Shown: positions 1 to 42,975 of the stretch, piece by piece | Position numbering within the stretch: the stretch's first letter is position 1 | Layout: each line of letters opens with the position of its first letter | Sequence record: NC_023610.1 | DNA length: 64,000 nt | Direction: 5' to 3' (one strand) | Translations under genes and position numbers: made by a program | The notes under the pieces: model-generated | The model's input: only the letters and a program-made list of their open reading frames with translations | Database searches by the model: none | Told to the model about the DNA's origin: nothing

Positions 1-11
1 GCGGTGAGAGC

Positions 12-1400
12 ATGGGGGACATGGCGGGTCTGGATGATTACAACTGGTTCCTGGCCATGCGTGATGCTATCGACTCGTCTCTCTCCGGTAAAGGTCTGAC
101 TGAAGCTGTGGTGCGTGACCAGGCGCACTGGGTGAACGAAATCGCCACCGGGAAGAAAGGGCGCGAACTCCGTCTGCGTAAGACCCTGTTCAAACGTCCT
201 GAAGGTCAGAAGAACGGTCAGGCGTTGGTGGGTAGTCGTGCAACCGAAGCGTTCGTTACCGGTACAGGTATCGGTCACCCGGTTCAGGTTCCTCTGTGGC
301 GCACCGGTATCTGGGTGACCATGCGTACGCCGTCTATCGGTTACCTGGCCGAGATTGACCGTGCGCTGGCGTTTGCCCGTCCTGAGCTCGGCATGGACAC
401 GTCTGGGATGTTGAACTCCAACGAAGCGTTGTTGTTCGAAGAAATCCTGGTTGATGCTGCACTGCGTCTGGTAACGTCTACCAGCTACCCGATTGCCTCT
501 TCGCCGCTGGAACTGAAAGAAGTCATCAGTGCCCACGACAAAGACCAGTTAATCTGGGGGATGGCTGTGGCGGCGTGGCCGGACGGTACAGACATTGCGA
601 TTCCGTGTACTGACGGTGAATGTCGTCACACTGACCGCGTCTTTGCTTCTCTGCTACGTATGTCCTGGGTAGATGAAGGTCGTCTCACCACGGCACAACG
701 TACCCACATGGACCGCGCTGGTACGGGTCGTGTAACGGATGAAGACCTGGAGAAATACCAGGCTGACTTCCTGACGCACGAGAACGAGTACTTCGAGTAC
801 AAGAGTCGTCGCTTCAACTTCTTCGTTTCTACGCTGGCAGAATACTTCGCAAACGGTCGTCAATGGATTAACTCCGTGAACCGTGCGCTGGTTGAAGCCA
901 TGGGCGAAGACCTGGAAGGGAATGACCAGAAGCGTGCTGCGCTAATCAACAGCCTGATTAGTTCAGAGCAACTCTGTCGTTACGGTCACTACATCCGTAA
1001 CATCGAAATCCCGAACCCGGAAGATGAAGACTCCCCTGACACCATCGACGGGGAAGATGAGATTCGCGATATCCTGAAACTGCTGTCCGCAGAACCGGCT
1101 ACCGTGAACGAACTGTTGCGTGCGGTGGATAACTATATCCAGAACAGTATGGTTTCCCTCATCGCCTCCATCAACGTGCCGTGCTCGGCGTGTGGTAAAC
1201 TCCACCTGAACCGTGGGGGTGAAGCACGACTGATTCTGCCGTTCAATGCTGCACTGGGTTTTTTTACCCTTGCGCAACGCAAGATGGTTCACGCGGGGAT
1301 TCAGCCGCTGACCGACCTTTCGACGTTAGGCATCCGGAATTTTGTACAACAGGTCTCGGCGAACGCGTCTATGGCGTCCTCGAGTCTGCCGGTAGCTTAA
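12..1400 (+). CDS. Probable tail assembly chaperone / baseplate-hub assembly protein (T4 gp26-like or lambda gpG-like); may start upstream of the window
   Basis: 462-aa ORF, frame open to the window edge. Cys clusters (PCTDGEC, CSACG) and a GFF motif near the C-terminus. Followed by a short gp51/gpT-like ORF. Confidence 0.5.
   Translation: MGDMAGLDDYNWFLAMRDAIDSSLSGKGLTEAVVRDQAHWVNEIATGKKGRELRLRKTLFKRPEGQKNGQALVGSRATEAFVTGTGIGHPVQVPLWRTGIWVTMRTPSIGYLAEIDRALAFARPELGMDTSGMLNSNEALLFEEILVDAALRLVTSTSYPIASSPLELKEVISAHDKDQLIWGMAVAAWPDGTDIAIPCTDGECRHTDRVFASLLRMSWVDEGRLTTAQRTHMDRAGTGRVTDEDLEKYQADFLTHENEYFEYKSRRFNFFVSTLAEYFANGRQWINSVNRALVEAMGEDLEGNDQKRAALINSLISSEQLCRYGHYIRNIEIPNPEDEDSPDTIDGEDEIRDILKLLSAEPATVNELLRAVDNYIQNSMVSLIASINVPCSACGKLHLNRGGEARLILPFNAALGFFTLAQRKMVHAGIQPLTDLSTLGIRNFVQQVSANASMASSSLPVA
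1256..1283 (+). other. Putative -1 programmed ribosomal frameshift signal
   Basis: G GGT TTT TTT (1256-1265) is in frame with the upstream ORF. Hairpin CTTGCG-CAA-CGCAAG at 1269-1283. The -1 frame is open 1223-1741. Confidence 0.65.
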
Positions 1401-1495
1401 CGGAGTTTCAGGCCAAGTTAGCGCTGCGACGGGCATACGACCTGGACCACCGCATCTACACCCCGGAATACGCCGCCAAACATCCGTACGCTCCC

Positions 1496-1741
1496 ATGGA
1501 GATGCATAAGACGGAGATGGCGGCTAACCGAGGCATGTACGAGGCGTTAGTGGAAAAGTTCCGTGTCTACCGCATGAAGGACCTGTACGGGTATAACTAC
1601 TCCGAGTTCCTTCTGTTACCGAATGACACGGCCCAGATGTTAATCCGGGATGCCATCAAAGCGTCTGCTGCGGAAAACAAGCAAGACGCTGCTGCGGCGC
1701 AACTGGCTGATGAGTTGCGTAAGTTAGAAGGAAATAAATAA
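1496..1741 (+). CDS. gp51/gpT-like C-terminal chaperone segment, probably translated as a -1 frameshift fusion (12..1741, ~576 aa)
   Basis: 81-aa ORF with no SD before ATG1496. Its frame is open for 273 nt upstream without ATG/GTG/TTG. Contains YGYNYSEFLLLP. Confidence 0.55.
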   Translation: MEMHKTEMAANRGMYEALVEKFRVYRMKDLYGYNYSEFLLLPNDTAQMLIRDAIKASAAENKQDAAAAQLADELRKLEGNK

Positions 1742-1746
1742 GTGCT

Positions 1747-1780
1747 CCCACCGTAGCGTTGGCTACGGTGGGGTGCTTTT
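1747..1780 (+). terminator. Intrinsic terminator
   Basis: 11-bp stem CCCACCGTAGC/GCTACGGTGGG, then GTGCTTTT. Confidence 0.7.
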
Positions 1781-1828
1781 ATGCGTCTTCCTATAGCACT
1801 GGGTGATTCAAGTGATGGGGTCTTTATA

Positions 1829-2478: not shown

Positions 2479-3120
2479 ATGTTTGAAAGTAACTTGATGG
2501 GGAAGAAATCCGGGAAGATTCTACTCGACATCAACTTTGCTAACGCGACAGTAGGCGACAAGACCATCATTGATTCGGGTCCGTTGGGGATTCCGCTGAC
2601 CCGGGGCGTGGTGGCAGGTGGTGCGAATGGGGACGGGGTAGTCAACGACCCCACGTACGGGAAGTGTTACTACTTCGATGGGTACGCGTATTTTCAGAAC
2701 CTGTCACCGGTGTTGGATTTGGCGGGCAGTAACTACGAGCTGACAATAGAGTTAGCGTTGGTGGGCAGTGGGTTCATGTGCACGTTCGCTACGGGTGACT
2801 ACCCGGCTGCCAACAACATCAAGAAAGGGCTGGAGTTACTGCACAACCAACTCAGCCAACCCATCCAGGTCTTCCAGACCACTGACGCGGGCGCGTATCA
2901 ACGCACTTACGGTTATGGTAGTGCCAATAACCAGATGTTGAAGCTAACGGTAAAAGAGGACAGCGCAAACATTACCGTTTCCAACAATCAAAACAGTAAC
3001 CAGGCCGTCGCTGCCAGATTCCGTACTGGGGGTGATTCGTACCTGATGCTGGGGACGTCTCACGGACTGGTTAACCGTTTCACGGGATACTTGAAGTCTC
3101 TACGGGTCGTCAAACTGTAA
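2479..3120 (+). CDS. ConA-like/LamG-type beta-sandwich protein, paralog 2
   Basis: Aligns end to end with the previous ORF (PTYGKCYYFDG..YF; FTGYLKSLRV vs FTGLMKSLKI). Confidence 0.5.
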   Translation: MFESNLMGKKSGKILLDINFANATVGDKTIIDSGPLGIPLTRGVVAGGANGDGVVNDPTYGKCYYFDGYAYFQNLSPVLDLAGSNYELTIELALVGSGFMCTFATGDYPAANNIKKGLELLHNQLSQPIQVFQTTDAGAYQRTYGYGSANNQMLKLTVKEDSANITVSNNQNSNQAVAARFRTGGDSYLMLGTSHGLVNRFTGYLKSLRVVKL

Positions 3121-33887: not shown

Positions 33888-33923
33888 AAAAAAAAAGAAG
33901 GGGCGCAATGCCCCTTCTTTTAT
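33888..33923. terminator. Bidirectional intrinsic terminator
   Basis: AAGAAGGGGC/GCCCCTTCTT stem with A and T tracts. Confidence 0.85.
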
Positions 33924-42940: not shown

Positions 42941-42975
42941 AAAAAAAAAGAGAGGGGCGCAAACCCCTCTCTTTT
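42941..42975 (-). terminator. Intrinsic terminator
   Basis: AAAGAGAGGGG/CCCCTCTCTTT stem with A9 tract. Confidence 0.85.

Follow-up and report, generated by a model that had tools for sequence, protein, structure and literature searches.

Programmed -1 frameshifting on slippery heptamers is used in several described systems to produce two proteins from one start. In the insertion sequences of the IS3 family (IS911/IS3), the downstream frame has no dependable start of its own and is expressed as a C-terminal extension of OrfA, giving OrfAB, through a -1 shift on an in-phase heptamer near the end of the upstream ORF, where the two frames overlap. U_UUU_UUC is among the heptamers used by IS elements (PMC4066793). 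IS3 and IS911 carry clear stimulators (a Shine-Dalgarno-like element, a stem-loop or a pseudoknot). The tail assembly chaperones G/GT of phage lambda (and E/E' of P2) share an N-terminus and are made at a fixed ratio by a -1 shift at a slippery heptamer, which in lambda is G_GGA_AAG, in a phage late-type operon. In gene 10A/10B of T7 and T3, a -1 shift at a U-rich site near the 3' end of the capsid gene gives a minor C-terminally extended isoform without depending on a strong downstream structure. Finally, the dnaX tau/gamma pair shows that a homopolymer-type slippery site can be exploited by the ribosome (E. coli) or by RNA polymerase (Thermus) to give two isoforms at a set ratio. In dnaX, however, the shifted product is the shorter one, E. 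coli dnaX has strong 5' and 3' stimulators, and the Thermus run is longer than the one described below.

We analyzed a window of 64,000 nucleotides of Erwinia phage PhiEaH1 (NC_023610.1), in which a first-pass annotation had proposed a programmed -1 frameshift at the end of a large ORF. The gene (hereafter A) belongs to the phiKZ gp77 family, a core gene of the nucleus-forming jumbo phages, and very probably yields a second, longer protein by a one-base backward slip at a run of seven T's, which would merge it with the small ORF downstream (hereafter B). As in IS3 and IS911, the downstream frame would be expressed as a C-terminal extension, but there is no transposase and no homology, no stimulator is conserved, and the gene is a core gene of a lytic jumbo-phage family. 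The logic of expression is that of lambda G/GT, but A has 607 aa against about 140 aa, no sequence or fold similarity was found, the gene is not in a tail tube/tape measure context and the heptamer is U-rich. Compared with T7 10A/10B, the protein is different (A is not a capsid protein by any search performed here) and the extension is a conserved 158-aa domain that has been annotated as its own gene. While -1 recoding of this type is known, this occurrence has been missed by genome annotations, and we found no description of it in the literature searched, although most subscription journals lay outside that search.

Anatomy of the locus

The sequence features noted in the first-pass annotation were all confirmed, and the observation is real. 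The elements, all on the + strand, are as follows.

1..1400: gene A, 0 frame (the 3' 465 codons plus stop; the gene starts before the window), homologue of phiKZ gp077, Chimalliviridae core gene cg18, phrog_4585.
1223..1741: the open -1 frame, stop to stop; the part proposed to be translated after the shift is 1265-1741 (158 codons plus stop).
1256..1265: slippery run G GGT TTT TTT; the element conserved across the family is the in-phase heptamer T_TTT_TTT at 1259-1265.
1265..1400: dual-coding overlap; the 0 frame encodes the 44-aa C-terminal tail of A, and the -1 frame the linker of the proposed long product.
1269..1283: perfect 6-bp hairpin with a 3-nt loop (CTTGCG-CAA-CGCAAG), 3 nt after the conserved heptamer, specific to the PhiEaH1 lineage and at most a weak local stimulator.
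1401..1495: apparent intergenic gap, coding in the -1 frame, with the most conserved motif of the downstream domain (LRRAYDLD..IY, about 1424-1459) upstream of any start codon.
1496..1741: annotated CDS CF95_gp001 (81 aa), a truncated call of the B domain (homologue of phiKZ PHIKZ076.4, phrog_12109).
1746..1783: terminator-like hairpin (12-bp stem) with a T tail, directly after the B stop.

The 0-frame codons CTG GGT TTT TTT ACC lie at 1254-1268 and contain two in-phase heptamers, G_GGT_TTT (1256-1262) and T_TTT_TTT (1259-1265), the T7 run being at 1259-1265. The only ATG, GTG or TTG in the open -1 frame is ATG1496, and no GGAG/AGGA-like Shine-Dalgarno sequence was found in 1471-1495. The match to phrog_12109 starts near nt 1352, well upstream of this ATG. 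No terminator-like site and no sigma-70-like promoter were found between A and B, and the two ORFs end one transcription unit.

The T run is not a sequencing error, since the independently sequenced Erwinia phage vB_Ea277G (99% identical overall) is identical from 1218 to 1620, and three metagenomic relatives with 61-89% protein identity have the same layout. A T7 run by itself is not rare in the window (15 matches against 12.2 expected), and its significance therefore comes from comparison. It is, however, the only homopolymer run of 7 or more in the window where two long open frames (465 and 172 codons) overlap. The large ORF does not start at ATG12, and the products of 462 and about 576 aa proposed in the first-pass annotation are not supported: the ORF runs off the left edge of the window because the linear GenBank record starts inside the gene. 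It is 607 aa in vB_Ea277G, so that the proposed fusion would be of about 721 aa.

Conservation of the -1 frame and of the T run

The layout was examined in 37 related loci, from phiKZ, PhiPA3, 201phi2-1, SPN3US, RAY, PCH45 and others. In 37 of 37, B lies in the -1 frame of A. The 25 distinct spacings between the A stop and the B start range from -136 to +218 nt and all equal 2 mod 3. Stops in the -1 frame of orthologues had been set beforehand as a condition that would refute the frameshift; none was found between the T run and the annotated B start in any of the 37 loci, whereas the +1 frame carries up to 11 stops. Over 31 representative lineages, the summed log10 probability of this absence is -28.7 against shuffles of the same stretches, although related lineages are not statistically independent and the quoted probabilities are upper bounds on significance. 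Across the family, the last -1 stop lies as close as 7 nt before the first Phe codon and the 0-frame stop as close as 24 nt after the two Phe codons, and the T run is the only slippery element in between.

The T run is under selection at the nucleotide level. An in-phase T_TTT_TTN heptamer occurs in 25 of the 31 lineages against 4.0 expected from codon usage, and no run of 200,000 simulations exceeded 13. The heptamer is kept in GC-rich phages that otherwise avoid TTT and NNT codons: Xoo-sp14, RSL2, DT01 and FLC1-1B use TTT or NNT here although these codons make up only 0-18% of their synonymous sets elsewhere in the gene. Of the two heptamers pointed out initially, only T_TTT_TTT/C is conserved, since the base before GGT varies. 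Six of the 31 lineages (PA1C, PhiPA3, Psa21, Noxifer, FLC9, pVp-JHP1101) have only T5-T6 at the site and keep just the U_UUY tetramer.

Codon-position statistics show that coding in the -1 frame starts at the T run. Variability at 0-frame codon positions 1/2/3 is 0.47/0.37/0.66 upstream and 0.38/0.42/0.44 in the overlap. Synonymous-site variation drops from 0.54 to 0.22 at the slip, and the p2/p3 variability ratio in the overlap is 0.96, against a maximum of 0.77 in 88 upstream blocks. Right after the slip, three amino-acid changes in the 0 frame (T/I, R/H and K/R) are synonymous in the -1 frame. Furthermore, the -1-frame protein alignment is gapless over about 150 codons in 14 diverged loci. 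Conserved B motifs lie upstream of every ATG/GTG/TTG in the PhiEaH1 clade, in two other metagenomic lineages and in phiKZ. The 67 "intergenic" columns upstream of the phiKZ ATG have a -1-frame position variability of 0.46/0.36/0.68, which matches that of the annotated part (0.49/0.40/0.64). Where annotated B starts exist, their positions are not conserved.

In-frame A-B fusions were also sought as "Rosetta stone" evidence. No genuine one appears among 43 B representatives found in 1.84 billion proteins, whose called lengths are 80-174 aa, so the split-frame layout is itself maintained. The one longer entry, P0025 (253 aa), is a database protein from a short, noisy metagenomic Logan contig in which the two frames are continuous; because it has a further frame disruption, it was judged to be assembly noise and was not used. 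A homologues have 548-656 aa, and the larger SPN3US and phiEaH2 proteins are longer at the N-terminus and not fused.

In contrast to the heptamer, the hairpin is not conserved. The 50-nt fold in PhiEaH1 has an energy of -18.8 kcal/mol (z -1.88), but RNAalifold on 13 loci gave a consensus energy of -2.4 kcal/mol with 0 covarying pairs, and only a 4-bp core recurs. Single folds of 15 loci gave z-scores from -2.5 to +1.2 with nothing shared. No Shine-Dalgarno-like element was found upstream of the slip site. The site thus has the in-phase heptamer and the selected, open shifted frame of a canonical bacterial -1 cassette, but neither a conserved hairpin or pseudoknot 5-9 nt downstream nor a Shine-Dalgarno-like element 10-14 nt upstream.

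Gene identity and decoding

Gene A matches phrog_4585 with an E value of 2.8e-96, and tblastn gave hits in 222 phage records, including phiKZ, PhiPA3, SPN3US and RAY. Synteny is conserved, with a gp78-like gene upstream and a divergent gp79-like gene. Table S3 of PMC10299810 gives cg18 as Goslar gp081, phiKZ gp077 and RAY gp267. The protein has four invariant Cys, and its AlphaFold2 model (pLDDT 73.7, pTM 0.73) predicts a novel fold. Searches of Pfam, NCBIfam and PHROGs returned only the unknown-function families phrog_4585 and phrog_8054, and searches of PDB sequences with single sequences and with profiles returned nothing. Foldseek of the A model gave E >= 2 against the PDB and only uncharacterized jumbo-phage proteins against BFVD, the only tail assembly chaperone in the BFVD list having an E value of 5.4 and a probability of 0.06. 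EL-like and other phages also carry the A fold. The model of the -1 piece is of low confidence (pLDDT 62.7) and has no PDB match. The labels "baseplate hub / T4 gp26" carried by two GenBank records were rejected because no profile hit backs them.

These data do not support the identity of a G/GT-like tail chaperone pair given in the first-pass annotation. The gene of a lambda-type tail assembly chaperone lies between the tail tube (major tail) gene and the tape measure gene, and its product is small (about 100-150 aa) and absent from mature virions. The neighbours here are a gp78-like ORF, a divergent gp79-like head protein, two phrog_6011 virion proteins and a phosphatase, while in relatives they are helicase and RNA polymerase subunit genes; in the window and in the annotated relatives examined, no gene named as tail tube or tape measure is adjacent. 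Judged from annotation and paper text rather than from a virion proteome, the 201phi2-1 record marks the neighbour gp138 as identified by mass spectrometry but not gp136 or gp135, and the Goslar virion paper does not mention gp081. Overall, the initial interpretation is supported in part. The -1 shift at the T run and the coding nature of the apparent 95-nt gap are supported, but the chaperone identity, the hairpin as a conserved stimulator and the product sizes are not.

We favour, with moderate confidence, a programmed -1 shift that is probably ribosomal. In this view, most ribosomes would read the 0 frame to the stop at 1398-1400 and give the 607-aa protein. A fraction would shift one base back on GGU UUU UUU, where both tRNA-Phe, in the P and A sites, can re-pair perfectly on U_UUU_UUU, and continue in the -1 frame from 1265 to the stop at 1739-1741. 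This would replace the last 44 residues of A with 158 residues, consisting of a linker and the helical B domain. The CDS 1496-1741, and phiKZ gp76.4 likewise, would then be mainly or only the C-terminal part of this long product and not a free-standing gene. U_UUU_UUY is among the efficient -1 heptamers in E. coli (PMC4066793). However, heptamers without stimulators shift at only about 0.1-0.3% in E. coli reporters, so that either the efficiency is low or there is an unseen stimulator. Many relatives have a plausible start codon of their own for B, and RAY has one upstream of the T run, so B may also be made separately in those phages. The anatomy, its conservation and the purifying selection on the -1 frame from the T run onwards are established by the analysis. 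The long product itself is inferred from comparative evidence alone, which is strong, without protein, Ribo-seq or RNA data, and it is likewise inferred that the shift is ribosomal rather than transcriptional, that its efficiency is probably low, and what the two isoforms do. Our guess is that the B domain is needed in sub-stoichiometric amounts on an A scaffold, as in other phage fixed-ratio pairs.

The same long product could be made by transcriptional slippage, which the first-pass annotation did not consider and which is not excluded, although we hold it to be less likely. The phage RNA polymerase would stutter on the T run and produce a subpopulation of mRNAs of altered run length in which A and B are in one frame. 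The conserved element is indeed a homopolymer, T7 in most lineages and T8 in RSL2, RSF1, RAY and LucasX, no conserved RNA stimulator is present, and pEa_SNUABM_54 keeps T7 although its second codon became TTG, a poorer A-site slip codon. Transcriptional slippage or frequent indels have been suggested as possible reasons for the under-representation of UUUUUUU in E. coli genes (PMC4066793). The Chimalliviridae transcribe with their own non-canonical RNA polymerases, whose slippage behaviour is not known. On the other hand, T7 is short for efficient slippage by known bacterial polymerases, whose documented programmed cases use runs of about 9 or more, and lineages with T5-T6 still keep the -1 frame open. 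BONAISHI has only T6 but a perfect in-phase T_TTT_TTC, and the base before TTT TTY is selectively T, as the ribosomal heptamer requires; this selection also lengthens the run, and the argument is therefore not decisive.

That B is an ordinary separate gene, started at its own canonical codon or at a non-canonical one such as CTG in PhiEaH1, with the T run and the open frame as by-products of a conserved Gly/Val-Phe-Phe motif and of shared ancestry, appears very unlikely. Most relatives have an ATG/GTG/TTG within 11-120 nt after the A stop and annotators call B separately, the Phe-Phe motif is conserved at the protein level, and the 0-frame helix after it is modelled with confidence. However, this reading explains neither the invariable -1 phase over 25 spacings, nor the absence of -1 stops inside the 3' end of A, nor the switch of codon-position pattern exactly at the T run, nor the use of otherwise avoided codons, nor the conserved B motifs without a start codon upstream in PhiEaH1, phiKZ and others. 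The nearest GGAG in PhiEaH1, at 1403-1406, lies about 20 nt upstream of the CTG, too far for a Shine-Dalgarno sequence. An artefact or a recent frameshift mutation that split one gene can be set aside. Homopolymer runs are error-prone and P0025 has continuous frames, but this reading is refuted by the identical sequence of the independent isolate, by the same layout in 37 loci from different laboratories and platforms, and by the lack of a genuine in-frame version among the 43 representatives. The 0-frame tail after the run is, moreover, conserved and differs from the -1 frame.

Implications for nucleus-forming jumbo phages

A more speculative and, on present evidence, unlikely possibility is that the shift is a universal, essential feature of cg18 that works without any cis-acting RNA stimulator. 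It would then depend on something the phage supplies in trans, for example a phage factor acting on host ribosomes or the slippage-prone behaviour of its own RNA polymerase. The ratio of short to long isoform would then be set, or timed, by the infection programme rather than by the mRNA alone.

The nucleus-forming jumbo phages (phiKZ, PhiPA3, 201phi2-1, Goslar, SPN3US, RAY, PCH45) are intensively studied, and their core genome of about 70 genes is a reference list on which cg18 stands as a bare "hypothetical protein" and the small ORF behind it does not appear at all. If the recoding is real, every annotation of this locus is incomplete, and phiKZ gp76.4, PhiEaH1 gp001 and their equivalents would be fragments of a trans-frame product of about 650-720 aa. 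Proteomic and interaction datasets searched against current annotations could then not see about 75 residues of conserved protein sequence in PhiEaH1 or phiKZ, although the -1-frame peptides are predictable. The family would also have a conserved recoding site of unusual simplicity, a bare U run, which makes it a natural place to ask whether translation or transcription fidelity is altered in infected cells.

Gene A and the downstream reading frame B in Erwinia phage PhiEaH1

The linear record of PhiEaH1 (Iapetusvirus; KF623294/NC_023610, matched at 100% over bases 1-64000) begins inside a gene, so that the long ORF taken by the first-pass annotation as 12-1400 (462 aa) is in fact open to the left edge of the window. 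In the 99%-identical but differently permuted genome of vB_Ea277G (locus L002, 1178-3001), it is a 607-aa gene. We refer to this long gene as A and to the downstream reading frame as B. The GenBank and RefSeq records of PhiEaH1 leave A unannotated, and their first CDS is the 81-aa ORF at 1496-1741.

The sequence features that had been observed in the first-pass annotation were all confirmed:
1254-1268: the codons CTG GGT TTT TTT ACC
1259-1265: the T7 run
1269-1283: a perfect hairpin
1223-1741: the open -1 frame, with no ATG/GTG/TTG before 1496
1496: the ATG of the annotated ORF, not preceded by a Shine-Dalgarno-like sequence

The genome of vB_Ea277G is identical through the whole region, and this is therefore not a homopolymer sequencing error. 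A T7 run by itself is not unusual in this window (15 matches against 12.2 expected), but this is the only long homopolymer run at which two long open frames overlap. Other long runs include T9 runs on the minus strand at 42941-42949 and 33888-33896, which lie inside open spans of 205 and 139 codons, and a facing T8/A8 pair at 51857-51864/51885-51892; none of them sits at an overlap of two long open frames. Nothing resembling a terminator or a sigma-70 promoter separates A from B, while a strong terminator-like hairpin (1746-1773; 12-bp stem, 8 G-C pairs) with a T tail, together spanning 1746-1783, follows B directly, 5 nt after the B stop. Immediately after it, two tandem paralogues (1781-2461 and 2479-3120; 31% identity, E 3e-31) belong to phrog_6011, 'virion structural protein'.

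Protein A matches phrog_4585 (E 3e-96), and the -1-frame translation matches phrog_12109 from about nt 1352, upstream of both the stop of A and ATG1496; both are families of unknown function. A tblastn search detected A in 222 phage records, including phiKZ, PhiPA3, SPN3US, RAY, PCH45 and Vibrio, Ralstonia and Xanthomonas jumbo phages. In phiKZ the two ORFs are PHIKZ077 and PHIKZ076.4. Table S3 of Prichard et al. 2023 (PMC10299810) lists phiKZ gp077, Goslar gp081 and RAY gp267 as core gene cg18, 'hypothetical protein', whereas B is not in that list. Four cysteines (residues 344, 349, 536 and 539 of the 607-aa protein; window about 596-613 and 1172-1183) are invariant in 21 homologues, and their arrangement (CxxxxC ... 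CxxC) suggests a structural zinc site. The AlphaFold2 model of A is moderately confident (pLDDT 73.7, pTM 0.73). It matches nothing in the PDB (best E 2.0) and, in BFVD, only uncharacterized jumbo-phage proteins. The two Phe codons of the T run encode residues 562-563, which fall inside a confidently modelled helix (558-572), while the last 25 residues of the 0-frame product are modelled as disordered. The -1 piece, modelled separately, is predicted to be helical from about its 50th residue, although this model is weak (pLDDT 62.7).

Conservation of the -1 phase and of the T run

To evaluate whether the two frames are connected, we collected 36 further loci from GenBank phages and metagenomic contigs. 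In all 37 loci, B is in the -1 frame of A. The spacing between the A stop and the annotated B start takes 25 different values, from -136 to +218 nt, every one of which equals 2 mod 3. Many independent indels have therefore preserved the phase. The value of -136 nt corresponds to Erwinia phage RAY (locus L031, NC_041973), where the annotated B (gp266) starts 136 nt inside gene A, upstream of the T8 run, so that in this lineage an independent start in the -1 frame is possible as well. In every locus, the -1 frame has no stop between the conserved Phe-Phe codons and the annotated B start, while the +1 frame has up to 11 stops. Against shuffles of the same stretches, the summed log10 probability over 31 representative lineages is -28.7; because the lineages are related this value overstates the significance, but the direction is unambiguous. 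Across the family, the last upstream -1 stop comes as close as 7 nt before the first Phe codon, and the 0-frame stop as close as 24 nt after the second. The change of frame must happen in that interval, and the T run is the only slippery element in it.

The T run itself is under selection. The residue preceding Phe-Phe varies (G, V, T, L, I, Y, E), yet its codon ends in T and the first Phe codon is TTT, giving an in-phase T_TTT_TTT or T_TTT_TTC in 25 of 31 representative lineages. The codon usage of each gene predicts 4.0, and no run of 200,000 simulations exceeded 13. This is particularly clear in GC-rich phages. Xoo-sp14 uses CTT TTT although neither codon occurs anywhere else in its A gene, RSL2 uses TTT TTT although all its other Phe codons are TTC, and DT01 and FLC1-1B are similar. 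However, the first of the two heptamers put forward in the first-pass annotation (G_GGT_TTT) is not conserved because the base before GGT varies. Six lineages (PA1C, PhiPA3, Psa21, Noxifer, FLC9 and pVp-JHP1101) have only T5-T6, which still contains the shift-prone tetramer U_UUY (PMC4066793).

Coding signature of the -1 frame downstream of the T run

We then investigated where coding in the -1 frame begins. In 11 diverged loci, the mean pairwise variability at 0-frame codon positions 1/2/3 is 0.47/0.37/0.66 upstream of the run and 0.38/0.42/0.44 after it. The resulting p2/p3 ratio of 0.96 exceeds that of all 88 upstream blocks (maximum 0.77). Since the second position of the 0 frame is the third position of the -1 frame, this is the pattern expected when both frames are read. 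Concomitantly, synonymous-site variation in A falls from 0.54 gene-wide to 0.22 in the window that holds the run. Immediately after the run, the 0-frame substitutions T/I, R/H and K/R are all silent in the -1 frame, which reads a conserved motif there.

From the run to about 150 codons downstream, the -1-frame proteins of 14 loci align without a single gap, while the 0-frame stop and the annotated B start wander. The best-conserved B motif (LRRAYDLD..IY; about 1424-1459) lies in the apparent 95-nt intergenic gap, upstream of every ATG/GTG/TTG in the PhiEaH1 clade and in two further metagenomic lineages. The same was observed for phiKZ (locus L011, NC_004629, 71442-73504), which has T7, a 218-nt 'gap' and no start codon. 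Its gp76.4 is annotated as an 80-aa ORF, and about 70 conserved -1-frame codons with a clean coding signature lie in the 'intergenic' space upstream of its ATG. The 67 alignable 'intergenic' codons have -1-frame codon-position variabilities (positions 1/2/3) of 0.46/0.36/0.68, which are indistinguishable from those of annotated gp76.4 (0.49/0.40/0.64).

An exhaustive HMMER search of 1.84 billion representative proteins found B only as small ORFs of 80-174 aa with scattered start points, and never genuinely fused in frame to A. The single longer entry, P0025, is a protein called on an SRR-derived Logan contig of 2303 bp, in which the A frame and the -1 frame are continuous but one further frame disruption lies downstream; this is most likely a noisy assembly of a close PhiEaH1 relative, and it was set aside. 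The split-frame arrangement is thus maintained, and is resolved neither into two free genes in arbitrary frames nor into one fused gene.

Proposed mechanism and comparison with other recoding systems

The simplest account of these data is a -1 ribosomal frameshift in which both tRNA-Phe re-pair on U_UUU_UUU. Decoding would resume in the -1 frame at 1265, giving a product of 563 + 158 = about 721 aa beside the 607-aa 0-frame protein. U_UUU_UUY belongs to the efficient class of heptamers in E. coli (PMC4066793). All the evidence is comparative: the arrangement of the frames, its conservation and the coding signature are direct observations on the sequences, while the synthesis of the long protein, the step at which the frame changes and the role of the two isoforms are inferred.

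The hairpin noticed in the first-pass annotation is real (-18.8 kcal/mol for the 50 nt after the run, z -1.88), but it is not conserved. Only its outer 4 bp recur, and these are fixed by the dual coding; there is no covariation, and the consensus energy is -2.4 kcal/mol. Fifteen loci showed no common downstream structure (z from -2.5 to +1.2), and no Shine-Dalgarno-like element lies upstream. Bare heptamers shift at a few tenths of a percent in reporters. So either the long form is rare, or there is an unrecognized stimulator, or the event is transcriptional. In the latter case the phage's own RNA polymerases may stutter on the run, and the T8 variants, together with a lineage that keeps T7 while losing the second Phe codon, are compatible with that. 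We consider ribosomal shifting somewhat more likely than not, transcriptional slippage possible but unlikely, and the absence of any recoding improbable.

In its expression logic the locus resembles lambda G/GT, T7 10A/10B and, most closely, IS3-family OrfA/OrfAB, where the downstream frame has no reliable start of its own. The first-pass annotation, which had proposed a programmed -1 shift producing a G/GT-like chaperone pair, is thus only partly supported: A is not a member of the tail-assembly-chaperone family, since its size, its genomic context and the sequence and fold searches all fail that test. The 'baseplate hub / T4 gp26' labels carried by two GenBank records find no support either. 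That a sub-stoichiometric long isoform decorates or nucleates an assembly of the short one is only an analogy.

We found no paper describing this event, although most subscription journals lay outside the literature searched. Frameshifting in phage genes is in itself already known. The present case would be a new, family-wide instance in a core gene of a much-studied phage family, with a minimal signal.
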